NCBI GenBank assembly: GCA_964247055.1
Contig: OZ176052.1
Coordinates: 7,626,001 to 7,690,000 of the forward strand
DNA: 64,000 nucleotides
Direction of reading: 5' to 3'
Origin: Paragordius varius
Lineage: Eukaryota; Animalia; Nematomorpha
Numbering within the stretch: position 1 is the first letter of the stretch; each line of letters begins with the position of its first letter. Under the pieces are notes generated by a model. That model was not told the origin of the DNA, did not search any database, and saw only the letters and a program-made list of their open reading frames with translations. A program made the translations under genes and the position numbers. Positions 426-30,752 of this stretch are shown one piece after another.

Positions 426-1937
426 CTGTAATTGAACGGCAGCCAAATAAATACAGGCACAAGCTATACTCGGTGGTTGAAAACGAACATAAACATTTGT
501 TTTGTAACTGTCATTTAGATAATTCCTACAAACGGAAAAAAATTGATGTCATTTAACAATTATATTATAAAATTGTTAAAAAATAAATATTACCAAGCGA
601 TTTGGACAAATTTTTGATTTTTTTCACACTCCAGCGTTTGTAAATAAATTATGAGTAATTTGTGCGGATGTTGTGAGTGAACAGCAAAACCTAGCTCTTT
701 CAAGATTCTGCGTTCGGCTTTTATTACTTGATTTTTGACATTAACGTAATACTGATCCAGTATCAAAGGAGATACTTTTCTAATTGGTAATTAAGAAAAT
801 TGATGGTTAAGTTTATAATGTTTTTACATTAAATCAGACTGATTCTAATGATAATCCTTATAATACCGGCTGTTTAACTATTTGTAGTCATATTTAAAAA
901 TAACTGGTCAAAAACATTTATGTTCATTAAATGATATAAAATATAAAGTATAAAATATTTTTAATTTTAAAAAATTGTAAAATATTTTGTAAAAATATCT
1001 ATTGGAATTCTTAACTGGCTGTGAACGTGATTAATGCATTTATGGTCAAATAGTTTATTATTTAAGAGTTTAAAACTAACGCCTTTAACTGAGATAGTTG
1101 GCTACCCTAAAGAGTGCGATTTCTATTTTGACTATGAAATGGTTAAATCATATGCATTTAATAACTTTTTCTAGGTTTTGGCAGAAAATTTTATAAGTGT
1201 AAATTGGCAAACATTACATTTTTCCCGTTAAATTTTTTTGGTAAAAGATGTCGCTCATATACAACAAAATAAAATGATATCCAAAGATCTATTTTTTCAT
1301 TTAAACTATTTCAAATCATATCAGTGGTTCGTTTTAACAAAATATTCGGAGGAACATATTTATATTCCCAAAATATTTTAAAAATATTTAACAAAAAACT
1401 AAAGTAATAAGCCAAAATCTATCTTTTTATAATATAATTAAATGTCAATTAATTTACTCCTTATTTTCCAATTGTCTTATATGATGAAATACATTGATCA
1501 CATCCCTTGGACGCCTTGGACTTTCATCAATTTTAGAGGCTAAAAATGTGGCTGCCATAGCAACAACCTACATAAAAATAATTAATAGATTTGAAATTAT
1601 GAAAATACGCAAAAAATGTACGTGTTCGAATTACCTCAAAATTGTATTTGACAAAGGATTTTATGAAAAAATATCTTTGATATAATAGTTGAGCAGTAGC
1701 GATTGAAACCTAAACATTATGCATGATAGTGTATACTTGTGGTAATCTCAATAGAACACCTGCTTCTTGAATCAATTCACATCCTCGTACTCGCAATTCA
1801 AAATCAATATCTTTGGTTAAATGATCCAATAACGAAGGTGGATTCAATACAAGATCAATAGGAATCAGAATGTTACTTAAACTAAATAGGGCCTGACAAC
1901 CTGAGTCATATGAATTTTTATTCCATGTGCAAAACAA
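426..1937 (-). CDS. CCNL: Cyclin L (partial; 3' exons not traced). Exons ~1937-1737, 1709-1635, 1567-1458, 779-594, 525-426
   Basis: Spliced translation ...[20 protein letters not shown]|[15 protein letters not shown]...[29 protein letters not shown]...[16 protein letters not shown]...HPHK...AW|NYLNDS... matches the cyclin L N-terminal cyclin box; all junctions are GT-AG and phase-compatible. Start codon unresolved. Confidence 0.93.
1710..1736 (-). other. 27-nt GT-AG intron in cyclin L
   Basis: GTATACACTATCATGCATAATGTTTAG ends in an in-frame TAG; removal gives LPQ|VSIATAQ, collinear with cyclin L LPQVAMATGQ. Confidence 0.88.
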
Positions 1938-1940
1938 TGA

Positions 1941-4900
1941 ATGAAACGGACGATCAAAACTTTTTGGGCACTTTTATTTTTTTCACTTCACATCTATTTT
2001 TTTGCCTCAGTTTTAAATATACATTTTCGGTCATCGCATATTCATGGTTTATCAGCGATTACTTCTAAAATTATCGAGCATCATCCATGTAACCGACTAA
2101 TATTCATAGTTTCGGATGGTCTGAGAGGTCGTACATTAATTGATATAAATGAGAAAAGCATCCCATTTTTACGGTATAGTTATATTTTATTGCTAGTAAT
2201 TTGTGCCAAAAAGGTCTTTGTAAAATTTCTAGCGCACATCTTCCTACAGAATCTCGGCCAGGACATGTAACACTTTTTTCTGGAGTTTACGAAGATTTAT
2301 CATCGCTTTTTACAGGTAACCTTTTTTCACAAATTAAGGGTGGAAAGATAATTTGGTGAACTATGATACCATTTTCAATCATAGTATTTACACATGGGGA
2401 TGGGGCAGTCCGGACATAATGAAAATCATTGAAAAAAGTAAATATTTATTACTTGAATAATCATAAAGGATACTCTGGATATATTATCTATACTTCGTGG
2501 TAGTCTAGACGATTTATTAAGTAAATGCCCTTGTGCTTAACTAATGATTTTACAGATCATTAGAAACTGGCCTTTACTGTTAGCGCATTTTCATGACCTA
2601 GCCAAGACGGTGGGGAGGTGGCAATAGGACTTTGTTGGCCTACTTCAATTATGATGTCCTATATTTTATTTATTGTGTAACATTATTGATATAACAATAG
2701 TTCATATTTAATTTTATTTTCCATATTTGGCATAACTATCTATTTGTTTTTTAGTTTTACAACCGCAAAGATTCGTATCAGGGCTAAGGTCAATATAATG
2801 GATGAGTTTTAAATATTTTCAAATGGCAAAAATACAAGAATTAGTAGGCTTAATTTTTTATTAACATTTTCGGTAATTTGTTATGAAATCTTTTTTTCAT
2901 AATATTTGTTATAAGGTGCATTAGCAAAAAAACGACACTTAAAATAATTAAAAAATTGTTTTACCGATATATTTGTCAACCACAATAAAACGATAAGATT
3001 AATATTTTACACAATTATGCCATAAATTTGGGTTGGAAATATCATTAGCTAAATCTGAAGCGCTATTCTATAATTTATTAATGTTTAAAATTATTTATCC
3101 ATTTTTTTGTTTTAGATAATTTGGATAAACTAAATATTGAGTTGAATGCTTATAACATTGGTTTTCAAGATTTTACGATGAAAAATCCAAGCGAATTAGA
3201 TCGATGGGTATTTTCGCGTGTCAAATCTTTCTTGGAGGCCTCTAATCAACAAAACAATTACTTAAATATATCCAAAATTATATTTTTCCTTCATTTGTTG
3301 GGAATGGATATGACAGGTCATATCCACAAACCCAATTCAAAGTATTTTATTTTATCTATTTATTTATTTATTTAGTGTAAAATTAAAATTATAATTAAAT
3401 TTTTGGTTTCCGGCTCTAATACATCTTTTTTGCTTTTCCATTAAAAAACGGTTAACAATAGTCAAATATATAAAAGTAAAATTATTTATCTCAATGTGCA
3501 AAATGACTATTATATTAAATATGGTGTTTTTAGTAGTAAACTTAAAACAAATAAATCAATTTATAATTTTTATGGATAATAATAATATCAATAAACTCCC
3601 TTATGTCGAGCCATCATAATTACATTAACTCAAACTTTTTTTACCTTTTAGAATATTCAATGAAACTCTACAAGCACTTGATGGTGGGATTAAATCGTTA
3701 GAGAAAACATTTAATAACTTTTACAAACATGATTCAAGACAAACATGTTATTTACTAACATCTGATCATGGAATGACTGATTGGGGTAGTCATGGTGCTG
3801 GTTCTTTAGATGAAACGATTGTACCGCTCTTTATTTGGGGTCCCTCACCCGACATTTTTCAAAGGAATCGTGACGGCCAAAATTGGATATCCAATTGGAA
3901 TTTGACATCTAATCAAGGTTTTTTTTATAAAAAAAATAAAAGTATGAAAGATATTTTGTGATTGTCGAAAGTTAAATATATATAAAAGGATTATTCGTTA
4001 TTTAATGTGTTTTGGATTGGATCTTGGTAACTTAATCCTATAATTTTATAATTTTTATCAATTTATTAACCTATTTATCTTACTATCCTTATAATTATAT
4101 GTTAAATTCAAATCATTTGACACATTTTTAAATAGATTACATTCGTTATAAGGTGGACTAAAAACATAATGATTCATTTTGCTGCAGAACATATTCACAC
4201 CTGTTACAAAAAATTACATCTATATTAATTCCTTTTTATTTAGATATAAATACATATTTAGTAGCATTTATGGTGTGAATTGACCAAGTGGCGTGACCAT
4301 TTATTTTTTTCGATCTATAAAATTATATTTTTTCATATAATAATCAGTATATTATGTATATTTTTTATTGCCCATAGAAGATATTATTGATCAGGCAGAT
4401 GTGGTTAATATAGCTTCGTGTCTTTTGGGAATACCTTTCCCCTCAAGTTCACTTGGAATTATTCCAAAAAACTTTTTTTCCTCAAAAGCAAATTTGTTGG
4501 AAAGGGAATGTCTAATAAGCAATATCTTAACGCTCAAAAATCATTTTAATAAAATCTTGGATAATTGTAAATTTTTATCCATCACTGGATCGAAAAACAT
4601 GTAAAATTTTTGTATTTCTTTTACAATATAACTTTTTTTAAATTAATTATACTGTGAATGGTTTTGAAACGATTTAGTAGGCATTTTTATTTATAATTAT
4701 ATAAGCTATTATTAAAACTGAAGCTGTTATCTAAACGCATCATAAAAAAATGGAACATTATTGATAGCGGACCAAACTGGAATTTACGAAAATAATTTTA
4801 TTTGGTTTTATATATTTTTATTAATCTAGTCTTTTAAAACAAATGTAGTGATATTCCATATGTTAATCCAAAAAAATCTAAATAAAATTATCCAACTTAT

Positions 4901-6627
4901 GATAACTCTTACAGTTATGATTAATTACGTTAGCAATATATTATTATGAAATAAATCTAGTGTTTATTATTTTTTAGGCCAAAAATCATTATTATAGTCA
5001 ATTGAAAATATTAGAAGATTAAGCTATTTTTGTTTTATATACTTTTTGAATAATCATTTTTACCCTATATAGACATAGTTATCAATTCGATTCCAGGCAT
5101 AACATTACTCAATTACATAATATTCAACAATATCTACGATCTCAAATTATTCAGTATCAAAACTTTGACGCTAAATTGTTTAAATTAGCTACTGGCGTGG
5201 CATATATGATATTTATTACAATTATAAGTTTTGTACCAAATCATCACTCACAAAAGATAACTTCTTTTAAAAATTTCATTTTCTTCCATACATGGTACTC
5301 GTTTATCATAACCATATTCCCTTTGATTATAACACTTTATTTGTGGTCACAAAGCGCCCCAACATTATATTATGTCTATCTGTTAATGCCTTTGGGCTTA
5401 GCTTTATTACTGCTTTTTTTGCTAGTAACTACTGAGTCCAACATTTTTCTTAAATACTCCGCATTCCGTGAGATTGTAAAGCGCAATACGATTGGAATAA
5501 TCTATCTTTTCCTTATGTTTACCATTATAATTGGATCTTTTTATGATCGCAAGGTAATGGTTTTCGGTTTAATTACAAAATTTATTTACACTTACCTTAC
5601 GACGGAACACTATTGTAAGTTATCCAACGCCTTAAAATTACAAAGTTTTAATATTTTTATGCTAACACCTTTTTATTTTATCAAGCTGCCCGGTCAATAT
5701 ACCATAATTCCTTTTTTTACTTGTATCGCTTGGTTGATTTGGTTGCTACACGGTGTAAATTTCCTAAAATATAAATTGGAAAAAGATAAAAAGCAAATAA
5801 TTGATAAGAGACTAGTTGTGAAAGCATTTGTTTTCATATTTAATATCTTATGTCTTATTATCTGTCGTTTGATGCCATCAATAAATTTTTTTAATTTTTA
5901 TCTTTCTCACATTTTTTCATGGACATTTCTCACTATTTTGACATTTTTATTCATTTTTTCAAAATTTAATAACAATTTGCAATCATCATTATCTAAATAT
6001 AATGTTCATCATCTCCATTATTATTTATATTTTATCAATGGAGAAGATATTTTATTTACCGTATTCAGTTTAACAACCGTATCATACGAATTTTTATTTT
6101 TACTCCTTTTCACCCATGTTATTAAGTGCTGGTGTAGTGCATCACACTACACTAATACAATCGGTGATTATGATGATAAGCAAAATGCTGCTACAAAATA
6201 TATAATTACAAGTATTATCCCTACCCTAGAATACATATATTTTATGTTTGCTAGCTTTTTTGGTACTGGTAATGTAGCAAATCTTAATTCATTCGATCCC
6301 AATTCTTGTACATGTTTCCTTAGTACCTTTAATCCCGTATTTATGGGTGCTTTTATTATTTTAAAGCTCATAATCCCTTTGATTATTACAACCATATCAT
6401 ACCAGCTTATTATGAATAATAAAACCGTGAAATTATCATTGTTTAAACAATGCAAACATGTCGCCATAATCTATGAATTGTTTTGCTTTCATTTCTTTTT
6501 GCATGTTAAAAATTATGGTAGTTGGCTGGATATTGGATTATCCCTAAGCCATTACATATTGTGTAGTATAATGATGCCTGTTACATTCATTTTATTATAT
6601 GTGGTAAATAAATTCCAAAATTTTTGA
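1941..6627 (+). CDS. PIGN: GPI ethanolamine phosphate transferase 1 (PIG-N/Mcd4), ~906 aa. Exons 1941-2173, 2197-2315, 2339-2437, 3116-3341, 3652-3917, 4378-4600, 5073-6627
   Basis: Motifs SDGLR, PTESRPGH, WGWGSPDI, LGMDMTGH, TSDHGMTDWGSHG, DQAD, FFGTGNVA..NSFDP and a multi-TM C-terminus. Joined exons total 2721 nt = 907 codons. Confidence 0.95.
2174..2196 (+). other. 23-nt GT-AG intron 1 of PIGN
   Basis: GTATAGTTATATTTTATTGCTAG; removal restores the frame into the PTESRPGH catalytic motif. Confidence 0.9.
2316..2338 (+). other. 23-nt GT-AG intron 2 of PIGN
   Basis: GTAACCTTTTTTCACAAATTAAG; removal restores FTGWKDN (homolog AKGWKEN). Confidence 0.9.
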
Positions 6628-6864
6628 CCAAGAAAATTTGTTAGCATTCGCAGTAAAATACTTATTTATATATTCATCAATAATATTTTTTCACCGGATA
6701 AGATATTTATTCATTTTACAATTTGAGCAGTCATGTATGACTTTTTTTACAATTAATTTCATGCAACAATAATAAACACTTAAGTTAATAGTTATATATT
6801 ACCTATGATTATAAAAATATTTATATTGAGTTTAGAAAGATGATTGAGATTGCAGTAATCAATG

Positions 6865-9191
6865 TTACATATTGATATCTTTGAGATTGCAAAGAGCTAA
6901 ACTCGTTTCCCATAAAGTTTGGGCAGTAATTGGATCCTTGGCATTTAATCCGGGTTCTTCAATTTTGCATTCACTAAGAAACATTAGAAATTTTGATTCA
7001 TTGGTTTTACGCGGCTTAAATATTTTGTTTAAACCAATTTTTTTTATTACAAATATGTCTTAGTACTGTTGATATGATAAATGATAGTGGTAAATAAATT
7101 TTAGCAGTTCGTTATTTAATAATCCCATACATGTTTTTGGGAAACACTATTGTTAGATAAAAATGTTTGTTCCGTAAAATATAGAGCTACCTGAAATATT
7201 TTCCAGAAACATTTTTATTGCTTTCATCCAAAACACAATAGAGTATTGTTTGAGCACCGTCCTTTGGAGTTTTCATGAAAAACCATAAAAAAGGCAAAAA
7301 ACACATGTAAAGAATTGTATTATTCCAGTATGGCATGTATTTGTGAGCAGATGTCAAGCATATTCCAGGATTGCAACAATTTACTCTGATATTTATACCA
7401 TCTGTAATAATAAATAGAATAATAATTATGTTGAAAATTGATTTTAAATCAAAAAAGGTGGTTCCCAAAGATTTTCTCCTTCAATATGGAAAACCAACAT
7501 CGATTAAATATATGTGAATATATGAACTTTAAGTTATTAAAGTATGGTCCTACTTTTTAGGTTATAATTGTTTAAGTTTGAGAATACCTTTTACAAATTT
7601 ACTAGTTTGTGGCTATTATGGGGCGCTCAAATCAACCAAAAAAATAAATAAATTATTAATTTAATAATATATATCATTTGCACGAGAGTGTACTTTAACA
7701 ATTCAAGTTGCTTAAACTTTTTTTGGTTTAAATTTCATTCTAACCGTGTATCATTGTTTTATATCATTTTTAACATATTTTCTTTATTTAACCTAAATTT
7801 TTAAATCAATATTAACCATTTATTATTCAGAAACCGTATATATTTGCTAAAAAAATATAATATTATTAAGATAACAGGCAATTAAAAGTTAAATAAGTTT
7901 CCTAAATTATTAATTACAATTTCACGTTTAAAACATTTCTAAGTTAATAATATTGTTGAATTAAAAAATTAATTTCAAACAAGTGGTTTTTGAATGTAAA
8001 ATTAATATTAAAAATGATGAATAAATAAATAATAAATAAACAAAATCAGGGTAAAAAATAAAAAAATGCAAAAATTATGAAATCCAAATTTAAAAATTTA
8101 AGGACCGAATTTTACTACTCGAAGTGCTTAGGCAAATGGTATAAAAAATATTAAATATCAATTATGGCCAAAAAAATTTAAATTTTCACAAAATTTGTTT
8201 TTATAAATTTATAAAATAATTCAAAAATAAATTTCTTGCTAATAATCTAAGTCACAATTTCAACAAAAAATTGATTATTGATATTTATTTGGTTATTTTT
8301 CTACTTGAGTTTTCACATTTGTTTTTATATTTATTTGGTATGATAATAAAGTTAGCATATAATTTAGTTTAAATATCGTAAATCGATACTTTCTTCGAGT
8401 TTTTGGGCCAACCTTTGTGTAAATAACATCACGGCTAATTTGCTAAAGGAATACGCTTTTCGGGCATCAAATTCATCTTTTTGGTCCTTTTTAGTTATGG
8501 TGCTGATTGTATTATCACTTTTCTGAGTTATGTAAGGAAAAAAATTAAAAGAAGCGATTCGATGAGCAATACAAGAGACATTGATAATTTGGCCATTGGC
8601 AACTTTTAACAAGGGGAGTATAGTTAAGGTGATATAAAAATGACCTGACTACTAATAATAATATTCATACTAAGATAATTGACTTGAAAATTATATTCTA
8701 AATTATCAGATGTGTAAACTGATGGATGCATCATAACCCCAGCATTGTTAATTAATAAATCAACTTTTTCCCATTCTAAAATAGATTAATATATAACCTT
8801 GTAAAACATCTATGCAAAACTCTTTTACCGATTCAAAATCATCTAAACAAAGTCGTTTGATTTTAACATTATTCGCATCAATATTGTAAGATTTTAGGAA
8901 TTTTAAAATATTTTGCTTGCCTTTATCAACTCGATTACATCCAATTATAATATTAGCACCTTTAATAAAAAAAATTTTACCTCTCTGAGCAAACTCCCTA
9001 ACCAATTCTAATCCGATACCTGATGAACCACCTGTTATAACTATATTTTTGACATATTTTTGAGAATTTTTAAACTGAGGTCCTCGGAAATATGTTCTAA
9101 TTTTAATTTATCCAAACCTAATGGCAAAAAAAATACTGATAAATATAATAATTTTCCAAGGTAAGTCTGATATATCGAAAGATGGAAGCAT
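6865..9191 (-). CDS. Retinol dehydrogenase 11/12-like short-chain dehydrogenase/reductase, ~343 aa. Exons 9191-9118, 9096-8981, 8959-8798, 8775-8671, 8644-8390, 7401-7191, 6973-6865
   Basis: N-terminal hydrophobic anchor, TGGSSGIG Rossmann motif, LLINNAGVM, catalytic YSFSK, NPGI and C-terminal AQTLWETS. Joined exons total 1032 nt = 344 codons. Confidence 0.92.
8645..8670 (-). other. 26-nt GT-AG intron 4 of the SDR
   Basis: GTATGAATATTATTATTAGTAGTCAG; removal restores FQVNYLSHFYIT. Confidence 0.88.
8776..8797 (-). other. 22-nt GT-AG intron 3 of the SDR
   Basis: GTTATATATTAATCTATTTTAG; removal restores the frame into EWEKVDLLINNAGVM. Confidence 0.88.
8960..8980 (-). other. 21-nt GT-AG intron 2 of the SDR (3n, no stop)
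   Basis: GTAAAATTTTTTTTATTAAAG; removal gives AQRGANIIIGC, collinear with the SDR ARRGARVILAC pattern. Confidence 0.8.
9097..9117 (-). other. 21-nt GT-AG intron 1 of the SDR
   Basis: GTTTGGATAAATTAAAATTAG; retention gives an in-frame TAA, removal gives FAIRTYFRGP. Confidence 0.85.
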
Positions 9192-9251
9192 CTGTTTTTA
9201 ACTATGACAAAAAAAAGCTGTCCAGGTATCTCCTTTTGTGTTAAAAAAATA

Positions 9252-9285
9252 CTAGCAGGCTCTGTCACGCTTTGCTTGGCATTAC
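9252..9285 (-). mobile_element. Helitron-like 3' terminus (family 2)
   Basis: Minus strand ends ...CAGAGCCTGCTAG|T after a GC-rich imperfect hairpin; similar to the copy at 13372. Confidence 0.45.
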
Positions 9286-9729
9286 CTTATATGATTCTTT
9301 AAATTTGCAATAAGAGAAAAAAAAGGAAAAAAAATTAGCGAAATCTGACCATATTTCTTTAAAAAGATTGTCTTTAACCATACTTTTACGGGGTGTTGCA
9401 TACGATCAAATATTTCTTTTACACAAAATTGGCCATATTAAAAATACGCCTTATTAATATTTAAACTTTCTGAATACGTTATAAGATCCTTCCTTTACAA
9501 AATATTGGTCAACGTTTTAGTGCGAGATTGTGCTCATGAGCTGTGATATAAAAAATTATTTATAATTAATAAAAGTATTAGAATAGGATACAAAATGTAG
9601 AACTCTTTTTATCAGTTTTTATTTGATGGCGCTACTTTTAGATAAAAAAACAGCAATAACTTTACTCTTAAAAAGTAAGATAGGTAACGTGTAACAAAAT
9701 TATATGCTATTATATATACAAAACTTCTT

Positions 9730-11870
9730 TAGATTTTATGGGTGGGGTGATAAAAAATTTTTTTTGACGCGAATATTTCAAGTCATGGCTTGCATTGATT
9801 TGATAAAAAATAACATTAGACGTCTTAGAAAACTTGATATAGAGGTGGTAAAAAATCACAAAGTAAAACTTGAAGATTTGGCTTGTGTGGTGTAGGGTAC
9901 ACTTGACAGATTTAATATGAATAAAATTTTCGTGGAAACTATTTGTGTACATAATTAAGGTTTTATATGTAAAATAACTCTGCTAATATTTAAGAACATT
10001 GCCTATTGCTAAATTTATCAATTCCGTGAATCCGCAAAAAAAATTTGTCACGAAAATATTTTAATATTAATGATTAAATATTAATAATATTTAAAATTTT
10101 CAAATCTTTGTTATATAGTAATAAACGCTAAAGGTTAGTTCACCATTAAAACATGTAGAGTTTATATATTATAAATTTCACATGTGTTGTTGATAATTAA
10201 TTAAAAATAATATGTTATATTGTATAAACATTTTTCCATTATATTTGCAAATGGATTCCTTACAGAATGTGGTGTGATATAATAGAGGGTGTTTTAACGG
10301 CGAATGGTTTCATCAATTAGTTAACGCGCTCAATAAATCTATAATACTAAATATACGTACCATTGAGTTTGTAAAATTTCAATAAATCCATATTATTTTG
10401 ATTGTCTATCTTTTTGTGCCTTATTTCATAAATTTTGGATTAAAAGAATAAATTCCGTAAAATTAGAATCGGTTGGCAAAAATGTTACATTCATAAGCAA
10501 AAGACTTGATATATATGTTTTTTAATCACCGATCTTTAAGTGTAGATTTGCTGGCTTATGTTAACTTGTTTAACATGCCGCGCTTGACTTACAGGTCAAG
10601 TGAGTGCAACATTTTTGTCGCACCCCGTATATATCCAAAAACTGTTTATAAAGAACCGGAGCGGATCTGTTAACATGAATATATTCAAATGTCACTAAAT
10701 AAAACAGTATCCCTAAAAATTATATCCTGATTATATATATATATATATATATATATCTAGTCATGTATGTTTAAAATTGTCAAACATACGTTTTTAATTG
10801 ATTTTACTTTGTTTTTGATTGTTTACAATAAATAGGCTATTATTATTTTAAGGGTTAAAAATGCGCATGTTGAAAGTTGACATATCAAACATCATAACAA
10901 TTAAAAAAAAGTAAAATCATTTAAAAACGTATGTTTGACAATTCTAAACTTAATTGACTGTATTATCTTGAAATATATATAGGGTGGGGTAATAAAAAAG
11001 TCGTACTTGACTTGTAAGTCAAGCGTGGCAAGTTAAGCAAGTTTACCTAAGCCATCACGTGTACACTTGAAGATCGGTGATAAAAAAACTTAGGTAAAGT
11101 CTTTTGGATATGAAGGTAACATTTTTTTCCACCCAATTATATTACGGAAATTTATTTGGATCATTTTCAACTATAATTTATAAAATAACGCACAACAAAA
11201 TTAACAGTCAACACAATACTATTGAAGATTTTAAACTTAATGGCACGTAGCTTATTTAATATTATAGATTTTCCAAATGAGCTGGGACTCTGATGAAACC
11301 ATTCGCTCTTAAAACACTCTCTTTTATACCTCACAACTCATTGTTAGAAGTCCATTTACAAATATGGGAAAATGTTAATATAAATATAACATATCATTTG
11401 TTTTGATTGAATATCAATATTACATATGAAATAAATTTATGATTAAATAAACTCTTTACATGAATAGTGTAAGCTTTCGCGTTTATTATATGATGTAAAA
11501 CGAAGATTTGAAAATAAGCAAGATAAATATTTAATTATTAATTTAAAGATATTTTCGTGATTCAATATTTATTTGCGGTTTTTCGGAATCGGTATATTTA
11601 GCATATTTTTATGTGCATTGTTTTTAAATATTAGCAGAGTTTTTATAAAAATTTATCCTCTTTTGTATCCACCCAATTTGAATAGGTTAATTAGTTAAAT
11701 ATTGTCAAATAAACAGTTAATTACATTAACAAAGGTTTTATTAGCATATAAAACCTAAATTATATGCAATAGTTTCCAAAATAATTTATATTTTGGAATC
11801 TGTCAAGTGTGCCATACACACATTTATTATTTAAGTTTTACTTGATCATATAATTTTTTATCACTTCCGA
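9730..11870. repeat. Diverged ~2.1-kb inverted duplication (arms ~9730-10632 and ~10978-11870) of a DNA-transposon-derived repeat; third partial copy ~12470-13140
   Basis: Matching inverted blocks, e.g. ATGCCGCGCTTGACTTACAGGTCAAGT / ACTTGACTTGTAAGTCAAGCGTGGCA and CTCTGCTAATATTT / AAATATTAGCAGAG; TA-CGGGGTG / TA-GGGTGGG termini. Confidence 0.7.
10758..10962. mobile_element. Palindromic MITE at the centre of the foldback
   Basis: TIR core TTGTCAAACATACGTTTTTAA / TTAAAAACGTATGTTTGACAA. Confidence 0.65.
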
Positions 11871-13371
11871 AAACTGCTTTATATAGGAAAATGGCAATAT
11901 TTGCGCACATTTTGTTATTGCATTTTTTTGATAAAAGCGAAATGCTTCATTCCAAAAAATTCACTAAAATATATCATGAACTACATATAAAAACAAGACA
12001 ATGTTTTTATAAAAAGGCGTCAAATTTTTGGACTCGTCTGAAATGGGCGAGTTCTTTTGAATAAAGGCGAAACCTACATTGCCAGATTACAATTTTTAAT
12101 ATTATGCTTTTTTTTCTTAATAATTAAATTTAAAGTAAATTTTTGAGGAAGCAAGTTTTATGATATTAAAAACATGGACGGTATATAAATCTAAGATATT
12201 ATATAAAAATTTTCCCATATAATTTGATGATGCTGAACTCTATCACCAAGTTAAAGGTTTGTTTCCCTTTTTCATTTTTTGTCCTAGTTTGCCTCTTTTA
12301 TATCCCAGAGCTTAATTTTGTAAATAAATTACACTTTTGAAAGTTAGATCATTTTCAGCCAGAATTTATGGAATAAGGTACAAAAAGATAAGCAATCAAT
12401 ACATGTGCATTTATTGAAGTTTTTCAAACTCTATAACACGTATTTTATTTAATATCAATGTTTTCATAAATATTGAGGGCTACTAAAAATTTCAAGTTGA
12501 TGAAACCATGCGACAGACTCATTATTTACCACACAAGTCATTTTCTTAGAAGTCCTGCAATTATATTGGGAAGATGTTTATGCAATATAACATATTATTA
12601 TTCTAAATTGATTATCACATTGCATTTGAAAAAAATTTATGATGAAATAAACTCATTACATGTGTGAACTTTAATTATTTTTAGATTTGAAAATTTACAC
12701 AAGATTGATATTCAATTATTTATTTTTCAGATATTTTCGAGAATCAAATTTTTTTGCGGGCTCGCAGAATTGATAAATTTGCATATTTTATATGCATTCT
12801 TTTAAACATTAGCAGAGTTTTTCTAAAAATATATCCCCTTTTGTATTCACCCCATTTGAACAGTTTAATTAGCCAAAAATCAAATAAACAGTTAATAGCA
12901 TTAACAAAGGTTTTAAATACGTATAAAACCGTAATTATATACATAAATTCCAAAATAATTTTATCTATATTTTTAAATCTGCCAAGTGTGCCTACACCAC
13001 ACTTTCAAATCTTTTAACTATTACTTGATCAAAAAATTTTTTATCACCTTCTTCAATTTTTCTAGCACTTAAGTCCTCTAATGTTTTTTATTATCACATG
13101 AAAGCAAGCCATGACTTGAAATTGCATGTCAAGTCAAACCACTTTAAATAAGGGCTAAACTTTTGTAGTTCCCGACCCCATTTATCATTGCGAGTTTCTT
13201 AACGACCCCAACAAATATAAAAGAAAAATAATAGTTTCTTCGAATAACACTTAGAAATATTGTTGATAATATTTATCAGGATTATTTCGGTTTAGAGATT
13301 GACAAAAATAATCTACATTTTTTATAAATTTTTATAACATTTTCTGATTCATAGTAGATGTATACGAGATA

Positions 13372-13405
13372 CTAGCTGGCCCTGTCACGCTTCGGTGTGG
13401 CGTAG
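13372..13405 (-). mobile_element. Helitron-like 3' terminus (family 2)
   Basis: CTAG|T end with hairpin GTCACGC-TTCG-GTGTGGC about 9 nt away. Confidence 0.55.
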
Positions 13406-13650
13406 TCTCCCGATAATTATTCTTGATAATTTGCAATTAATAGAGTTAATGGATATAAAAAATTATGATAAATGTATGCATAGTTCAGCTAAAATTATAT
13501 AAATTTATTATTATATTTTTACTACAAGTAATCTTTGTCAAACGTAAAAATACTTAAAGAGAAATACACAATAATATTTAAACCATTTAATAATATCTAT
13601 AAATTATTAAATTCACAGAAAAAAAATCCTAGTTCTCAATGTGTAATATA

Positions 13651-13821
13651 CAGTAGCGTGTGGAGTAAAAGATTGTTAGTGCAAAATAGAATAAAAAAAA
13701 TATTTTTTTTAAAAAAACAATCCTAGTTGTAAATACACATGTATAATGTCCCCTTGTTTTTTTAAAAAAACAATTTTTTATTCTATTTTAAACTAACAAT
13801 CTTTTACTCCATACGCTACTG
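13651..13821. mobile_element. Tc1/mariner-type MITE (171 bp, TA TSD) inserted in the GIY motif
   Basis: TIRs CAGTAGCGTGTGGAGTAAAAGATTGTTAG / CTAACAATCTTTTACTCCATACGCTACTG; excision restores VIY-KIKC. Confidence 0.9.
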
Positions 13822-14044
13822 TATAAAATTAAATGTCAAGACTGCGACAGTGTATACATAGGACAAACAAAAAGAGGACTAGATGTTAGGATAAAAGAAC
13901 ATAAAACGGCAGTTAGCAAGAATAAAACAAATGATTCTGCTTTGGCATATCCTGCCTTTAAATGCAAACATAAAATAAACTGGGATGCCGAAGTTTTGAT
14001 AGAGAGGAAAATAGAACAAAAAGAATATTGAAGGAAAGTTTTTA

Positions 14045-14218
14045 CAGTAGCGTATGGAGTATAACAATATTAGTCCATAATAGAATAAAAAAAATTTTTT
14101 TTTAAAAAACAATGGGATATTATACATATGTTGTATTTAAAACTAGGATTGTTTTTTTAAAAAAAAACATTTTTTTATTCTTTTATGGACTAATATTGTT
14201 TTACTCCAAACGCCACTG
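14045..14218. mobile_element. Second copy of the same MITE (174 bp, TA TSD), opposite orientation
   Basis: TIRs CAGTAGCGTATGGAGTA / TACTCCAAACGCCACTG; internal CCTAGTT block inverted relative to copy 1. Confidence 0.88.
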
Positions 14219-14376
14219 TATATTAACAAAGAAGGAAATATAATGAACAGAAAGAAGGAACAATATTAATAACATTACAAACTTTTTTCTTATTAACACA
14301 CATGTTTTTTTAGTTTCATATTTCATTTATTTTTAATTTATAATTTAAATTTTAGATTATATTTTAATTTTTTTTT

Positions 14377-14433
14377 AAGTTTGACAAAGATTACTTGTAG
14401 TAATCGAAATATCATAATAAATTTATATAATTT
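14377..14433 (+). ncRNA. Candidate minimal type-I hammerhead ribozyme in the Penelope pseudo-LTR
   Basis: UUGACAA(A) core variant, stem II GAUUAC-UUGUA-GUAAUC, GAAA, stem III AUAU/AUAU, AUA cleavage triplet, weak stem I. Confidence 0.45.
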
Positions 14434-14539
14434 TAGCTGAATTATGCATATATAATAATAGAATCACACTTCAGCGTAAACAATATCCAATGATATACAT
14501 ATTTAATAAAAAAATGTCTTTAATTATTCTTTTACGGGA

Positions 14540-15579
14540 TTTTGCATAGGCTGAAATATTGTTTACTTTAAATTGACTATAATTAATCTGTCCCTTATTA
14601 AAGTTAATATTCAACTATCATGGGATTTATTTTAAAATTTTCTTCTTATGAAATCATGGTTAAAAGTTTTAATTTTAAATTGTGTTCACACAGCTGGGAT
14701 CAAGGGATATCAAAAGCAAATCATTTGCGGTCTCTTTTTGAATGAAAGAATGATATCCCCAGAAATGTGTTTAACTGAACTCGTATGGCTTCTTAAGTTT
14801 TATGACGCCGAGTTAAGTTCTTTGCTTTTATAGGGCAAATATTTGGAATCATATTTGATACCATCGTCTCATGGGTTATTCGCAAAAAATACCTCAACAC
14901 TAAATAATCGTTATATGATGGCGTTTTAGGGCATAAAGGCTCCAAATTAACGGCTAATAAAAACCATACCTTAATTTTTATCTAGTTACGTGTAATATTT
15001 CAAGCTTTTAATGAGCTCATATGGCTTCATAAATTTTCTGTAAATTATTTCTAAAACAATGCAATTTCTATATAGTGGCGCAGTTTTAGTGACTATCTGT
15101 TTACCCAGCAAGCCAACATTAAAAAAACAGAAGACTAAATTTTTGGCTTTTAACAGAGAATAAAACGAAACCTCAGTGAATTTTAACGGTCTCATACTCT
15201 GGGCAAAAAATTATTTAGTTTTTTTGAAAAAAATGGCATTTTACGTGGGGAACGGGTAAAAAGAGAGCCTCAATTAAAAAAGTAAGCCGACTAGGTTCGG
15301 CGCAATCGAAAAAAAGTAAAAATAATCACATTTGAAATCGAATGGTATGACGTTTACCGGAAAATTGTCTCAAAGACACGATTTTTCTGGAATTCTGTTT
15401 TCAAAAAACCCGTTCTCTACACGGGGTGGGCCCGAACTGGGAGCCTAATTCAAAAAAGGGCGAAGCTATTGTCGGGGCATTCATTAATGATTATATTTTT
15501 TTGACATTTGGATTTAAATGGGTCTACCGGTTTTCTGGAAACAAATCACAAAGCCAGCTTTTTCTTATAAATATATAGA
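14540..15579 (-). mobile_element. Non-autonomous Helitron family 1, copy C (5' end intact, 3' end not seen; left boundary approximate)
   Basis: A|TCTATATAT start on the minus strand at 15579; internal sequence shared with the copies at 23151 and 33755. Confidence 0.75.
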
Positions 15580-15720
15580 TTATAATGATCGGAATAGAAA
15601 TGCTGGTATAAACAGTCTTTCCGAACCAGTAGATTTTATGATATATAATCTAAGATGATTGTTATTTTTCTATAACAATTTTGCAAGTTAAAAAACATTT
15701 TTTGTTAAATTGTATTTTTA

Positions 15721-15768
15721 CCACTCGCGACCCAAACGGGGTCGCGACCCATAGTTTAATAAGCCCTG
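15721..15768. mobile_element. DNA-transposon terminal fragment (GGGTCGCGACCC...CCCTG)
   Basis: Palindromic GGGTCGCGACCC subterminal motif ending in CCCTG, resembling hAT-type MITE ends. Confidence 0.4.
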
Positions 15769-16299
15769 CTTTAAATGATAATGAAATGTGAAATTTGTGT
15801 AAATTTTAAAAAAAATAATTTATTTTTAAAAATTTAAAAATATGCGAATATTTTAATCAATATAACAAATTTATTGAAATATTCAAATTCATCAAATGTG
15901 GTAGAAATTTTTATATTATCTTAAAGTGTTTTTATCCCATTTCCATCATGCATCTAAATCAGTGGTATTCAGGAAAAAATTAAAGGGTCCCAAAAAATAT
16001 ATAGGATCATGCACCCTATAATACAGATATGAATTTCAAAGTTGTTTGACTCATTTGTAGATATTTATATTCAAAATTAATAAATCAAATAATATTATTG
16101 CCAAAAAAATTTTTTTGGGAATGAAGCCGATGAGCGGCGGTTTGTGTCTTGATAAATAGTATTAAGATTAACAAACTCGAACATGATAAAAAAACTTAGC
16201 GTAGTATGCCTTTTCTCTATATTTATTTTTTTTTGGATTGATAATCTAGCACTTATTAAAATATTTTATCTCAAAATGGCATTTTTTATTTTATTATTA

Positions 16300-17040
16300 C
16301 ATTTTGTGGTAGTTTTCTATTCCAAAGCGATTTAAATTTTAATATCTTAAAATATATTTAAGGTATTAAGCCAAATTTGAAAATTTGTTTTCTTTAGCGT
16401 TTTAGGCGCATTATTTAATTACTAAAAATAAATGTAAAATCGAAAAAAAACCATCTCAAACTTTTTTGCCGTCATTTTTACATTTTTTTAACGCTTTATT
16501 ACCTTTTGGGGTAGTTTTATACCCCAGAGCGATGTCTAATTTGAATATCTTTGAGCCGAAATAAAAATATGCTTTCTGTAGTCTTCTTGCATTGAATTTT
16601 TTTTAAAAATGTCAAATTTAAAAAAAAATTCATCTCAAACGTTTAGGTCGCCATTTTTTTACTATATTGCCAAAACTGTAGTACAAAATTTAGCTCTGAA
16701 ATATAAAACTACCCCAAAGACAAAAACTAAAAAGTAACGAATTGTAAATCAATAATCTAACGGGCTAAATGTTTTTTATGCTTAAATAATGTAAATAATT
16801 AACTAAAAATCAGGTTACATTTTACCAGCAAAAACTTAATATATTTTAATTCTAATAAAAGTTCTTCCTTTCAATTATGTTTTGGAGATGTCCCAATTTT
16901 AGATTTTTTTACAAAAATGTAATGAGTTTATTGATCATACGTGAAGCAATGTTTGATATTTAAATTTAACTAATATAACTTTCAAAACTGTTAACAAATT
17001 AGAGCTCTGGGAAATAAAACTACCCCAAAAGGTGAACTAG
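16300..17040. repeat. Dispersed AT-rich repeat family (two tandem copies here; relatives near 28915-29070, 45520-45800, 63410-63600)
   Basis: Shared block GGGTAGTTTT..CCAGAGCGAT..AATATCTT..TTTAAG..TTTAGGCGCATT at all sites. Confidence 0.6.
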
Positions 17041-17356
17041 GACGAAAATGTCAAAAGGTAATGATGTGTTAATAGTTTCAAACCCATATCTAAAAATTGA
17101 ATTTATATAAAAAATTGGTTATGTTTTTTGAATGTAATACATATATTTTAATGATATTTTTTGGATTTAGCTTTTACCAGTTTATTTTTATCTAATAAAA
17201 TGTACGCTAATTTCGAGATTTAACGATATCGAGCAACCTAAAAGCATAAGAATTCTGTACGTTTATCTAACATAGTATAAATGTTTCATCTGGATGCCCG
17301 ATTTAGGAGGCATTCTTAACACATTTTCAAGCAAATACTACCAATAAGCTGTTTAA

Positions 17357-20300
17357 ATGGAACTTGTTGAAGGTATTCAAATATTTATAAAGGGGAAGAA
17401 GGTGAATTAAGTGAGCACGATTGTAAAACGAAAAATAATACAACTGATACAAAAAGCAGTGAAAGTGAAAAACAATCCGACGAAGGTGAATCTAACGACC
17501 CTTTTATTAATGCTAAAAATATGGTCGATGGGATTGGATCATTTTTGGCAGAATATAAGGATGATCTAGTTACATATATTTTTAATTTTAAGAAGGAACA
17601 TACGGCAAAATGTCAAAAAAATGTGGAGGTTCAAAAGAACGAAGTTTTTTAGCTAAATTTAACATATTATTTAGGTGTTATATAGTATGGAAAGAGAAAT
17701 GAAACCTAACAAAGGTTCTTTATAATTTATATTTTAATATACGCTATTATTTTATTTTTAATAAAAAACATTGTCTTATTTTTTTAATGAGTTTTTATAA
17801 CCAAATATTCTAAAAATGTCCAGATAATATTTAATTGTTTTAAGCCTTAAATCTCTTGATTTGTTGATAATATTTTTAAAAGTTTAAAGTTTTATTTTTC
17901 ATTTACAGGGACTGTAAGGGAACGTTTTAACAAAAACACGGTACATTGTGTCTCAAATTATTTCTAAGTTAATAATAAAAGCGTATTATCTCAATGTTAT
18001 GAAAATATAATGGAAACGGAACATAAGATAAAAAACAAAAAAAAACCGTTCTTCTTTTAATATCTCTTTTTACTTTTACCTAATTTATTAATTGTTTTAA
18101 AGCTTTTTTTCATTATTAGTATTTGATTTTTATGATTATTTTATTATCAAGATAATGGCGAACGAATACCTCGATCGTTTGGCGGAAGTACTAAGAACCC
18201 CCAAAACGTTACTCGCTTACAAAAATATTATGGAGATGTTGAGGAATTGTATGACCCCGAAGATTTAGACGATTATGATAGTGAATTGTTGGATAAGAAA
18301 AGCAATTTGAATGACCACATTGATGAAATCAATAAAAACGAGTTTTATTGTGAGGTATGTATATATTTTAACCCTTTATTATGCTGTTTAAAAGATAAAA
18401 TGAATTTTTTACATGCAAGTTGTTGCCGATAGAATCTATTTTATGTCTTTAAACAGGATATCATCTGTTTTTTATATCTTTTCGAAATAATAAATTTAAA
18501 TTGAAAGCTTTTACTGTCATTTAACATCCAGAGTTTTTAGTGTTATTGTTATCGTGAAGTTGAGTATATGTTTTTTTTAATATTTACCTATCATTTATGT
18601 GATGAACTTTAATGATATAATATTTTTGATTTTCTAAATTATTCTAATTAGGCTTAATGATTTCAAGTAATGTTATCAATGTCCTGGTTAAGTTTAACGA
18701 AACTCACTAAATCATTTTTTTTATAAATTACAATATATTAAATTTTTATATTGTTAATTTGTTTCTTTATGCAGATATGTGATATACGCATGAATGGAAA
18801 ACAAAGTTTTGATGCTCATATTCGTGGAAACAAACATTTTAAAGTAAGATTTAAAACACGGTTGGGCTTTTGATCTGTTAAATTTTTTATAACTAGTCTG
18901 ACTTGTTTATGCAGTTGTTTCAATAAATGTATTTGTAGATAAATTAAACTTATCAAAATTTACAAACCATTAAAGTTTTAAACAAATAATATATTTTTTA
19001 TAGATGATATAATTTCACATTTAAATACCATCTTATTTCATATCACATGATTAACATATGTCTATTTTCGACTAATTTTTTGGCGGCACAGTCACGGTAA
19101 TGATTTTTTCTGCATGTATGATCGACGCAATCTAATATCAACTCATTTTTCAATATATTATTTTTAACACATTTTTTAGAAGCTAAAGAAGATACAAGAA
19201 GGTATTTATTTTTTATTCTATTTGTCTTCTCTTATTAATTAATTCAAAAATATGTGTGTACCTAGCTTCTCAAGCTGCAAAGAAACAGGAGACCAAAGCT
19301 TATGTTGAACCAATTATCACGGAATCATCGGATTTGAAGCCAGTAGACGTTACGCTCTCCAAAATTGTGGAACCTCTTATTGGTATATTTAATAAATCGT
19401 TATAGTTTGACCTTAGGTTTAACCTAAATCAAAAGTAACAATTTATAGTTGATAACAACACTTGTTATACTATCAAATTTTTTTGGAAATTGTTTCTTAT
19501 CAACAAAAAATTGCTGCTGATGAATTATTGATTTAAAAAAAATCTAGTTTTTGAATCAAAAAATGGTCTTCGCAATAAAACATAGGTTATAAATGAAAAA
19601 GTGTTACTAAAATAAAATAAACATACTACTAGTCATATTTTTTTGCCTGAATTCTTCATTTTGAATACTTACATATAACGATTTTTTGCCCTTTATCAAA
19701 TGTAGTGAAAATAAATTAAAGGAAATCAACACTCTTCAATGATAATAAATATCTTCCATAATCATTATTATTAGCCAAAGCTAACAATGAAACAATAATA
19801 TTTTTTTGGAAGCAGTTGCGAATGTCGCAATTAAATATACGGAGTATACTTACTTGCGACACCAACAACTGTTTTCAAGAAAGGATCAAATTTTATAACA
19901 TTAATTGGTTTAAAACATTTTAGCAATTACACTATATTATAAAAATCCTTTAATATTTGTGACTATTTCTATTATTCGCACTCAAAATTTATATTCATGC
20001 CCTAGGTTTGCAATTTATCGTTGAATTAAAAAGCAAAGTTGATAATGAACCCAGATACTTATGTGAGCTATGTGACAAAAAAGCTGACATGCGTACTCTG
20101 GAATCGCATCTTATAAGCTACGTACACCGATGGAATTATATTGTAAAATAGTATTATTACTCCATTATCATACTTCCGCAAAAATTAATTATTAATTTGG
20201 GCATTTTATGTATTGGAATGTTGAAATTAATTTTTGCCAAATGATATTTGACATATTTCGCAAAGTGTGACAATCTCGCCGATGTAACAATATTTGATGA

Positions 20301-28591: not shown

Positions 28592-29488
28592 AGTTTTTGT
28601 TTGTTATTTCCCATTTGACTGCTATAATAGTTGTAAAATAAATTTACTATGACACCTGTATTATTATTTTAATTTCTGTTCATTCCTTAATAGTGTTTAG
28701 TATTCATATTCGTTTCATATAACAATGTTGTAAATAGTCGTGTAATTCATATAAGATAGCAATAACTCTTTGTATCGTTCAAAAGGGGGCGCATCCCTTT
28801 GTTAGATGATGATAAATTATTTTTTTTTAAATATTTTTGAGATTTTGAGCCATATTTAAATCTCGATATTTTTATAAAATTTTCATATTAAAATTTATTT
28901 TGTTTTAACAGTCCATTATAGTTTTACATTCCAGAGCGATTCGAAATTTAAATATTTTAAAAAGTATTTAAGGTTTTATCCGAATTTAAATGCTTTCTTT
29001 AACCTTTTAGGCGCATTATACAAAAGAATTTTTTTAAAAAACTGTAAAATTGAAATATCCTCATCTCAAACTTTCTTCCTTTTTTTCTATAATTTTGTTC
29101 AATCTCTAATGCAACAGGCAAATTAATGTGTATTATGGTTAGAAATTAGCTTTATCAGGCAAAATTTTACCACTTTAAATATTTTTATTTCAATATCCGC
29201 TGTTCATTTCATTTTGGAAAACCCTAGAACAAAACTATAAAAATTATAAACATTTTTATTAAATACGTGTAACAATATTTGATGATTAAATTTTAACTAA
29301 AAAACTTTCAATGCTGTAGTTTATTTACATAATTGATTTCTGAGATATATACCCTAATATTATAATTAGGACAAAAAGTTTTTAATTGAAACTAATTCGA
29401 ATATTAATTTACTAGTTATGCAATTTTTTATCACAATTACATAATGTGATTGGATAAAATTTATCGTCTGCCTTTTTTAAATTTTGAT

Positions 29489-30670: not shown

Positions 30671-30752
30671 CTTGTTATATTTGTCTATTAAAAATACGAA
30701 TAAATTATTTACCATTGTTTATCAACAATTTAGCTTATTTTTTATATACCGT

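Follow-up and report, generated by a model that had tools for sequence, protein, structure and literature searches.

The 64,000-nt stretch of DNA analysed here (the window; about 27% GC) contains three genes whose introns could be anchored by homology. These are the 5′ part of a cyclin L gene (426–1937, minus strand), the gene for PIGN, GPI ethanolamine-phosphate transferase 1 (1941–6627, plus strand), and a retinol-dehydrogenase-like SDR gene (6865–9191, minus strand). The cyclin L fragment comprises exons 1737–1937, 1635–1709, 1458–1567, 594–779 and 426–525, separated by introns of 27, 67 (1568–1634), 678 and 68 nt (526–593), and its first exon has no in-frame ATG. PIGN has seven exons and introns of 23, 23, 678, 310, 460 and 472 nt, all GT–AG, while the seven SDR exons are separated by introns of 21, 21, 22, 26, 988 and 217 nt. 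As far as they were examined, genes for a class C GPCR, Mos, HORMAD and a rhodopsin-type GPCR have either long introns or no introns. Rfam and tRNA scans found no snRNA or tRNA in the window, which also holds no splicing factor gene.

The closest database proteins for two unrelated genes, HORMAD and SDR, both belong to the nematomorph Gordionus sp. m RMFG-2023, at 43–45% identity. For HORMAD this was the best of two matches (45% identity, E 4e-74), and for SDR exon 5 it was the best of five among 1.8 billion representatives (CAK9302221.1); the class C GPCR exon gave no match in the database search. At 26.9% GC and 64% repeats (genome preprint), the Gordionus genome agrees with the window in GC content and in repeat load. 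The window carries no rRNA or mitochondrial marker, so the assignment to Nematomorpha is a probable one, drawn mainly from these two proteins. A dicyemid or myxozoan source was considered and rejected, given the Gordionus matches and the presence of GPCR and meiotic genes.

Seven segments of the anchored genes, here termed micro-introns, are 21–27 nt long. That of cyclin L (1710–1736, minus strand; 27 nt, GTATAC..TTTAG, phase 0) would place a TAG stop at codon 9 if retained. The two in PIGN, each of 23 nt on the plus strand, lie at 2174–2196 (phase 2) and 2316–2338 (phase 1, AAG end), and either would shift the frame. Four lie in SDR on the minus strand: SDR1 at 9097–9117 (21 nt, phase 2), which if retained brings in a TAA stop at codon 4; SDR2 at 8960–8980 (21 nt, 10% GC, AAG end, phase 1), the sole one of the seven that stays in frame without a stop, adding seven residues; SDR3 at 8776–8797 (22 nt, phase 1); and SDR4 at 8645–8670 (26 nt, phase 1), in which two internal AGs precede the CAG end. 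Retention of SDR3 or SDR4 shifts the frame. The original prediction, made by reading the sequence, had proposed all seven at these coordinates, and all have exact GT...AG ends; its count of six that disrupt the protein if kept (a stop in cyclin L and SDR1, a frameshift in the two PIGN segments, SDR3 and SDR4) was likewise correct. Their description as very AT-rich is borne out by a GC content of 10–30%. The 3′ ends are AAG in two of the seven, TAG in four and CAG in one.

Introns of the three genes fall into size classes of 21–27 nt (n = 7), 67–68 nt (n = 2) and 217–988 nt (n = 7), so that the micro class makes up 7 of 16 and the other nine span 67–988 nt. The proposed bimodality of sizes stands for these 16 introns as an empty interval between 27 and 67 nt, the next sizes among them being 67 and 68 nt. 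Within each gene the micro-introns precede all other introns, being the first one in cyclin L, the first two in PIGN and the first four in SDR; those of PIGN and SDR all lie roughly 550 nt or less from the ATG. Micro-introns and repeat-bearing long introns do occur together, as had been claimed: SDR intron 5 (988 nt) contains a high-copy repeat at 7611–7992.

Exact excision of the micro-introns restores conserved protein in all three genes. The five cyclin L exons correspond to residues 52–101, 102–126, 127–162, 166–224 and 226–258 of the cyclin L1 chain 9vuh_B, abutting at residues 101/102 of human cyclin L1 with no gap across the 27-nt intron; PDB chains of cyclin L1 and L2 are contiguous with the fragment, residue by residue, across this and three longer introns. 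Excision in PIGN yields 906 amino acids, from the ATG at 1941 to the stop at 6627, with a Pfam PigN match in the last exon (E 7e-34). PIGN exon 2 gave no relevant structure when compared with the PDB, and the PIGN junctions were compared with orthologue proteins in place of structures. Junction 1 (PFLR|N..) is colinear with orthologues including P0011, P0016 and P0029 and is closely followed by a one- or two-residue indel, and junction 2 (..FTG|WKDN..) is gapless against ..GWKENP.. in orthologues.

The SDR reading frame after excision runs from 9191 to 6865 (343 amino acids). SDR1 falls ahead of the stretch that aligns with homologues and is placed by continuity of the frame from the ATG; the exon that follows it matches adh_short profile positions 1–22, with the TGxxxGxG motif. 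At SDR2 (..QRG|ANIIIGC..) the relatives P0006 and P0007 have no insertion, and the junctions at SDR3 (before ..KVDLLINNAG..) and SDR4 (..NYLS|HFY..) are gapless against P0003 (Gordionus) and P0007. Profile positions 75–108 begin right after SDR3, and the Pfam adh_short positions 1–22, 75–108 and 122–168 follow exon order; these single-exon matches were sub-threshold and were used for order alone. Single-exon Pfam scans gave no match for PIGN and cyclin L exons. The motifs that excision was expected to recover (PTESRPGH, GWKDN, LINNAG and LPQV) are all present in the joined products, with continuous frames in PIGN and SDR and a fragment in cyclin L.

These reconstructions leave little room for decaying pseudogenes in which random short AT-rich insertions break the frame by chance. 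Such decay would produce disruptive segments like six of the seven and could leave cyclin L exon 1 without its ATG, but it would not give all seven segments precise GT and AG termini within a size range as narrow as 21–27 nt. Outside the segments, the frames run unbroken through 906 and 343 codons and keep their catalytic motifs, these genes also have canonical longer introns, the segments recur free of indels in a second individual (below), and PIGN and cyclin L are single-copy housekeeping genes. We consider pseudogenes very improbable.

How much the form of an intron can prove by itself was assessed across the window. With G at about 13.7% and A or T at 36.3%, both GT and AG are expected in a random segment with p of about 0.0025; by our own arithmetic, seven of seven would arise by chance at about 1e-14, with a few registers allowed for each. 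Joining open reading frames across GT(N16–32)AG throughout the window gave 292 matches, while seven pairs of control dinucleotides gave 268–402. Log-odds of codon usage, with a training set of about 2,700 codons, reached at most 0.9 bit per codon and ranked the known introns 12th to 569th of 744. Micro-introns are not callable from sequence statistics in this window, and since frame joining does not exceed chance in such AT-rich DNA, support for the seven comes from homology together with their exact GT–AG ends. A perfect 20-nt GT–AG unit at 7191–7210 lies within the conserved VSGKYF coding sequence, so intron form alone proves nothing. GT–AG links between exons of an NHL-repeat gene gave many equally open alternatives, and its introns of about 94–102 nt were therefore left out of the counts.

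Three further candidates had been proposed in a U1/matrin-type zinc-finger gene on the plus strand. Segments of the stated sizes, 20, 24 and 31 nt, are present, but none of the three is anchored by homology and ORF logic is what recommends them. The 20-nt GT–AG candidate (17373–17392) is required if translation starts at the ATG at 17357 and dispensable with a later ATG. The 24-nt GT–AG segment (17569–17592) is in frame and stop-free, and may be intron or coding sequence. The 31-nt GT–AG candidate (17644–17674) contains an in-frame TAG, and its removal sets the phase for joining, via a 437-nt intron (17715–18151), to the exon running on into the zinc finger. Excising the 20- and 31-nt candidates gives a single open reading frame from ATG 17357 into that exon.

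Splice signals in the seven anchored micro-introns are sparse. The 5′ sites read GTA in five and GTT in two, with no conservation past +3 in this small sample, and the same small sample shows reduced motifs (roughly GTa ... AG) of the Dicyema/Myxobolidae type. Every micro-intron has A residues 7–12 nt before the AG, in segments that are about 35% A anyway, and no branch-point or other internal consensus is demonstrable among the seven. The pyrimidine fraction at −14 to −3 is 0.63 in the seven micro-introns and 0.79 in seven longer ones. Assignment to the U12 type was considered and rejected, as the extended 5′ consensus (A/G)TATCCTT with a TCCTTAAC-like branch site was found in none of the seven. 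The suggestion that splice-site recognition is modified in this lineage is speculation; the GTA/GTT 5′ sites are equally weak in the long introns.

The GT–AG ends also bear on ways round the spliceosome, namely IRE1/tRNA-ligase-type splicing, ribosomal frameshifting or translational bypass. They are a spliceosomal signature, needless for IRE1 or recoding, and are present in seven of seven. The lengths do come near the 26-nt XBP1 intron, and the lack of a visible branch-point or polypyrimidine consensus would suit such a route; on the other hand, seven such cases spread over three housekeeping genes with no relation to one another are a poor fit to a stress- or gene-specific mechanism, and we give this reading very little credence.

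Presence of the segments in genomic DNA was examined using short-word contigs from three runs (X2, X4 and X5) and two samples, which among the micro-introns covered the four of SDR. All three runs proved to be DNA; RNA-labelled runs under the same species label, X6 among them, yielded no contig that matched the locus. An X2 contig over 8082–9198 has no differences in 1,117 nt. An X4 contig from another individual, covering 8251–9300 and spanning the four SDR micro-introns, has 13 substitutions and no gaps in 1,050 nt; the same individual has many 1–3-nt indels in the long PIGN introns. Contigs of all three runs span the four SDR micro-introns at even depth, and no joint skips any of them. The original prediction had called for a check against assembly artefacts, and the SDR segments have the same length in independent DNA contigs, one set of them from a second individual. 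This unchanged length means that the SDR segments are neither assembly errors nor absent from DNA. AT-rich, low-complexity DNA is error-prone in long reads, which might have led to false insertions or to the collapse of longer introns; for the SDR segments this reading is largely refuted by the agreement of three runs and two samples, and for the set as a whole we rate it lower still than the readings above. Equally slight is the chance that the segments are removed from DNA instead of RNA, like the internal eliminated sequences (IES) of ciliates: their size range resembles that of short IES in Paramecium, and programmed DNA elimination occurs in some nematodes, but the ends are GT–AG and not TA, and in the DNA contigs of three runs the segments stand at full, uniform depth and the joined form is absent. 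Against a deletion confined to the soma these runs weigh less heavily.

We therefore favour, with a probability of roughly 0.85 judged from the sequence evidence, the reading that the 21–27-nt segments are genuine U2-type GT–AG spliceosomal introns of cyclin L, PIGN and RDH-like SDR pre-mRNAs in what is most likely a nematomorph. We infer their removal from RNA, as well as the branch site and the cause of the 5′ placement. The micro-introns would make up a class of narrow size range near the promoter, in genes whose downstream introns, of 67–68 nt or 0.2–1 kb, can carry repeats. Their removal would follow the intron-definition mode put forward for dicyemids, myxobolid myxozoans and ciliates, which needs few signals; here these would be GTA or GTT at the 5′ site, a branch adenosine roughly 7–12 nt upstream of the terminal AG, and a polypyrimidine tract reduced to little or nothing. 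As retention of six of the seven stops or frameshifts the protein, unspliced transcripts would be non-productive. The 5′ position may reflect cap-proximal help to U1/U2 recruitment, or transposon insertions may have been excluded near promoters while other introns grew.

In a 2026 paper, the animals credited with introns below 30 bp are myxobolid Myxozoa and Dicyema alone; the paper ties such introns to parasitism and genome reduction and predicts further cases (PMC13644364). The list of known cases accompanying the original prediction had ciliates and dicyemids but omitted the myxobolids Henneguya salminicola, Thelohanellus kitauei and Myxobolus spp., whose median intron is 22–27 bp (PMC13644364). 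Its premise of a typical animal is also doubtful, the nearest relatives here being Nematomorpha; the members of this phylum are parasitoids, in line with the link to parasites put forward in PMC13644364.

Dicyema japonicum shares with the present genes GT–AG introns below 30 nt, a ~GTa 5′ signal, a bare 3′ AG, an unclear polypyrimidine tract and a parasitic lifestyle (PMC13644364). In Dicyema, a spiralian mesozoan and not an ecdysozoan, the short class comprises most introns in the genome (PMC13644364), whereas here it is 7 of 16 anchored introns at gene 5′ ends, in genes shared with 0.2–1 kb introns and in a repeat-rich genome. Dominance of the short class as defined for Dicyema and Myxobolidae, a median below 30 bp, is not seen in the three anchored genes. 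The size range of the myxobolids is that found here (21–27 nt), and they too combine AT-richness of the genome (H. salminicola, 29% GC) with reduced motifs and with short introns that adjoin other short introns in multi-intron genes; they differ in being cnidarians, in that the short class sets the median, and in having Iso-Seq support where ours is from sequence (PMC13644364). Restriction of their short introns to 5′ ends is not reported in the available part of that paper (PMC13644364).

Ciliates, including Stentor coeruleus (15–16 nt; cited in PMC13644364), likewise have narrow length ranges near the physical minimum, and retention of their tiny introns mostly gives a premature stop, making mis-splicing non-productive. 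They are unicellular, however, with essentially all introns tiny and no long class in the same genes. Trichomonas vaginalis combines a 23-nt spliceosomal intron with a large repeat-rich genome but is a protist whose active introns number only about 63 (PMC12316389); they are identified by extended conserved motifs, of which none is visible here. Ordinary animal minimal introns are about 50–90 nt (PMC13644364); the 67–68-nt cyclin L introns fit this range, and the 21–27-nt class lies well under it, the anchored introns leaving the interval from 27 to 67 nt empty.

The literature searched, which excluded the Current Biology paper on Acutogordius/Nectonema, contains no description of introns below 30 nt in Nematomorpha, and the word ‘intron’ is absent from the Gordionus genome preprint and from a preprint comparing nematomorphs with mermithid nematodes. 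At slightly better than even odds, on present sequence evidence, Nematomorpha would be the third independent animal origin of introns below 30 nt and the first in Ecdysozoa, with a discrete promoter-proximal class beside transposon-laden kilobase introns. A sharp 21–27-nt class would add a bilaterian, ecdysozoan lineage to those known. Published genome sizes for other nematomorphs are roughly 200–290 Mb; extreme intron shortening would then need no genome compaction. The same genes hold introns of 217–988 nt, one with a high-copy repeat, and so would separate intron miniaturisation from compaction. One spliceosome would serve two very different intron geometries in a single transcript, and the size contrast within genes would be an internal control for asking what sets minimum length and whether cap proximity aids signal-poor introns.

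Common gene finders and RNA-seq aligners assume a minimum intron length of about 20–40 nt, so such introns would yield truncated or split gene models. The Gordionus SDR model begins just past the position of SDR2 and lacks the NAD(P)-binding motif. If published nematomorph gene sets are systematically 5′-truncated in this way, part of the ‘rampant loss of universal metazoan genes’ could be an annotation effect, and claims about gene content in this little-studied phylum would be affected.

The cyclin L, PIGN and retinol-dehydrogenase-like (SDR) genes of the window each carry very short GT...AG segments in their 5′ parts. Cyclin L (minus strand) was modelled with exons at 1737–1937, 1635–1709, 1458–1567, 594–779 and 426–525, separated by introns of 27 (1710–1736), 67, 678 and 68 nt. 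PIGN (plus strand; exons 1941–2173, 2197–2315, 2339–2437, 3116–3341, 3652–3917, 4378–4600 and 5073–6627) formed a single open reading frame (ORF) of 906 aa across introns of 23 (2174–2196), 23 (2316–2338), 678, 310, 460 and 472 nt, its final exon carrying the PigN domain (Pfam, E 7e-34). SDR (minus strand; exons 9118–9191, 8981–9096, 8798–8959, 8671–8775, 8390–8644, 7191–7401 and 6865–6973) had introns of 21 (9097–9117), 21 (8960–8980), 22 (8776–8797), 26 (8645–8670), 988 and 217 nt and encoded a 343-aa protein with TGGSSGIG, NNAG and YxxxK motifs. In the region 1737–2050, the first exon of cyclin L offered no in-frame ATG and adjoined the start of PIGN on the opposite strand (start codon at 1941). 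A GT-AG intron of 52 nt (1971–2022) or 16 nt (1971–1986) could link a minus-strand ATG at 2034 with the cyclin L frame, an option that would put a cyclin L mini-exon antisense within PIGN exon 1.

The seven segments named in the original prediction lay at exactly the coordinates it gave, with perfect GT...AG ends and lengths of 27, 23, 23, 21, 21, 22 and 26 nt. Its count of six disruptive on retention was also right: the cyclin L segment and the first SDR segment each introduced an in-frame stop and four others shifted the frame, the exception being the second SDR segment, which added seven residues with the frame kept.

We queried the cyclin L exons one at a time against solved structures, and they matched residues 52–101, 102–126, 127–162, 166–224 and 226–258 of human cyclin L1 (9vuh_B), with neither gap nor overlap at the 27-nt intron or the three longer ones; the missing residues correspond to split codons. 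The spliced PIGN N-terminus, aligned with seven orthologues (lungfish and Diptera sequences included), was continuous over PFLR/N and FTG/WKDN (slashes mark junctions; orthologues GWKENP), the sole indel being of 1–2 residues after the first junction. Spliced SDR was colinear at junctions 2–4 with two relatives (P0006 and P0007) and at junctions 3–4 with its orthologue from Gordionus (P0003), and single SDR exons matched adh_short profile positions 1–22, 75–108 and 122–168 in order, the intervening 53-aa exon fitting a 52-position gap in the profile. SDR junction 1 falls in the unconserved N-terminal membrane anchor and was placed by ORF continuity. The fourth SDR micro-intron ends in three near-adjacent AGs (TTAG TAG TCAG), of which only the third yields the frame of the homologues; either of the others, as an alternative 3′ site, would shift the frame.

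Open-frame joining over GT(N)AG of 18–34 nt was no commoner than for seven control dinucleotide pairs, and a codon-usage score had no power to pick out introns in this genome; ORF logic by itself is insufficient to call micro-introns. A perfect 20-nt GT...AG unit also lies within the conserved VSGKYF coding sequence of SDR (7191–7210, minus strand), a caution that form alone identifies no micro-intron; this unit could be a cryptic splice site. At the seven sites where homology requires removal of a short segment, GT and AG stood exactly at the ends that restore both frame and alignment. By base composition we calculate a probability of ~0.0025 per site, or ~1e-14 for all seven with a few registers allowed, and the combination of homology-demanded removal with exact GT/AG ends exceeds chance.

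Three further candidates lie in a zinc-finger gene, at 17373–17392 (20 nt), 17569–17592 (24 nt) and 17644–17674 (31 nt). Removal of the 20- and 31-nt units gave one ORF from an ATG at 17357; beyond a 437-nt intron this ORF carries on in phase into an exon leading to a U1/matrin-type zinc finger. The 24-nt unit was stop-free and in frame whether removed or kept. These candidates, which lack a homology anchor, are plausible introns.

The original prediction had named assembly artefacts as something to be excluded. We compared contigs of four public sequencing runs with 3600–9300, a span that holds the SDR sites and not those of cyclin L or PIGN. Three runs (X2, X4 and X5) covered exons, introns and intergenic DNA evenly and are therefore DNA. 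The fourth, labelled as RNA (X6), gave no contig matching this span, and the locus was absent from the RNA-labelled runs under the same species label. Parts of the three loci also occurred in public DNA runs from four other organisms. An X2 contig was identical to the window over 8082–9198, an X4 contig (from sample S3, a second individual under the same species label) differed over 8251–9300 by 13 substitutions and no gaps, and no contig from the public runs over 3600–9300 skipped a micro-intron. The four SDR micro-introns, thus reproduced in independent DNA contigs across the compared span, are real genomic DNA, stable in length; excision of the micro-introns from RNA is what we infer from sequence. 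Over 3900–5400, sample S3 (X4 and X5) was ~2–3% different from the window in both introns and exons of PIGN, 1–3-nt indels being frequent in the long introns, and X2 had stretches of half depth, which suggest heterozygosity of the reference individual. The 988-nt SDR intron contains a high-copy repeat (7611–7992) with a summed contig depth of 2000–3000, compared with ~340 in its flanks, and with numerous loose ends and alternative joints in the three DNA runs.

The 16 homology-anchored introns fell into sizes of 21–27 nt (seven), 67–68 nt (two) and 217–988 nt (seven), with none between 27 and 67 nt. Micro-introns led in every gene, occupying intron position 1 in cyclin L, positions 1–2 in PIGN and positions 1–4 in SDR, and all those of PIGN and SDR were within ~550 nt of the ATG. 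None was seen in the examined parts of the HORMAD, Mos, rhodopsin-type GPCR and class C GPCR genes, which have long first exons. The 5′ sites were as weak in micro-introns as in longer introns (GTA or GTT, with no conservation past +3), and the pyrimidine fraction of the last 12 nt before AG was 0.63 in micro-introns versus 0.79 in longer introns (n = 7 each). A branch-point motif was not definable from seven sequences.

GC content was ~27% in nearly all 2-kb bins of the window, the sole raised bin (36%) containing a reverse-transcriptase fragment (RVT_1, E 7e-12; 22432–22827, minus strand), and the window held no tRNA or Rfam matches. In the region 29450–33653, an intronless HORMAD gene encodes 406 aa with a HORMA domain and a PHD-like C-terminus (Atlas search). 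A Mos-like kinase gene follows within ~80 nt on the same strand; the pair is very compact, in a window otherwise rich in repeats. For a class C GPCR gene with kilobase-sized introns (47431–52236; ANF_receptor and NCD3G, Pfam), a word-indexed protein search found no relative; the gene appears highly divergent.

The HORMAD ORF had two database relatives only, the better from Gordionus sp. m RMFG-2023, also a nematomorph (45% identity, with long near-identical blocks), and SDR exon 5 had five among 1.8 billion representatives, the best being P0003 (CAK9302221.1). The Gordionus genome, as described in a preprint (26.9% GC, 64% repeats), resembles the window. On these grounds the genome under study is probably that of a nematomorph from a genus or family other than Gordionus; the protein collections returned no self-hits, so its genes are not annotated there. 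At 228 aa, the P0003 model starts at adh_short profile position 37 of 195, immediately past the position of micro-intron 2 in the window SDR, and lacks both the nucleotide-binding motif and an equivalent of exon 6. As a lead from a single case, this truncation is what annotation software that enforces a lower limit on intron length would yield; the one case suggests that the sites of micro-introns are where published gene models of nematomorphs are cut short.

Introns of <30 bp had been thought absent from animals until, among 51 genomes, they were reported in myxobolid myxozoans (median 22–27 bp) and Dicyema japonicum only (PMC13644364, Mol Biol Evol, September 2026). In that study the motifs were reduced to GTa...AG, the branch site might consist of weak A residues, U2 and U2AF were canonical, and more lineages were predicted; its main text makes no mention of Nematomorpha. 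The literature searched, which did not extend to the Acutogordius/Nectonema paper, contained no account of short introns from hairworms, and the word ‘intron’ is absent from both the preprint on the Gordionus genome and a comparative one covering nematomorphs and mermithid nematodes. The kind of intron is therefore already known, while the lineage appears to be new. The original observation of micro-introns was borne out; its interpretation is supported in part. Whereas in the published cases of myxobolids and Dicyema such introns are not a minority class, here they are one, located in the 5′ parts of genes that also hold long introns; clustering of short introns with one another is, however, seen in myxobolids too. 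Taken together, the micro-introns most likely represent a genuine class of spliceosomal introns in a nematomorph genome.
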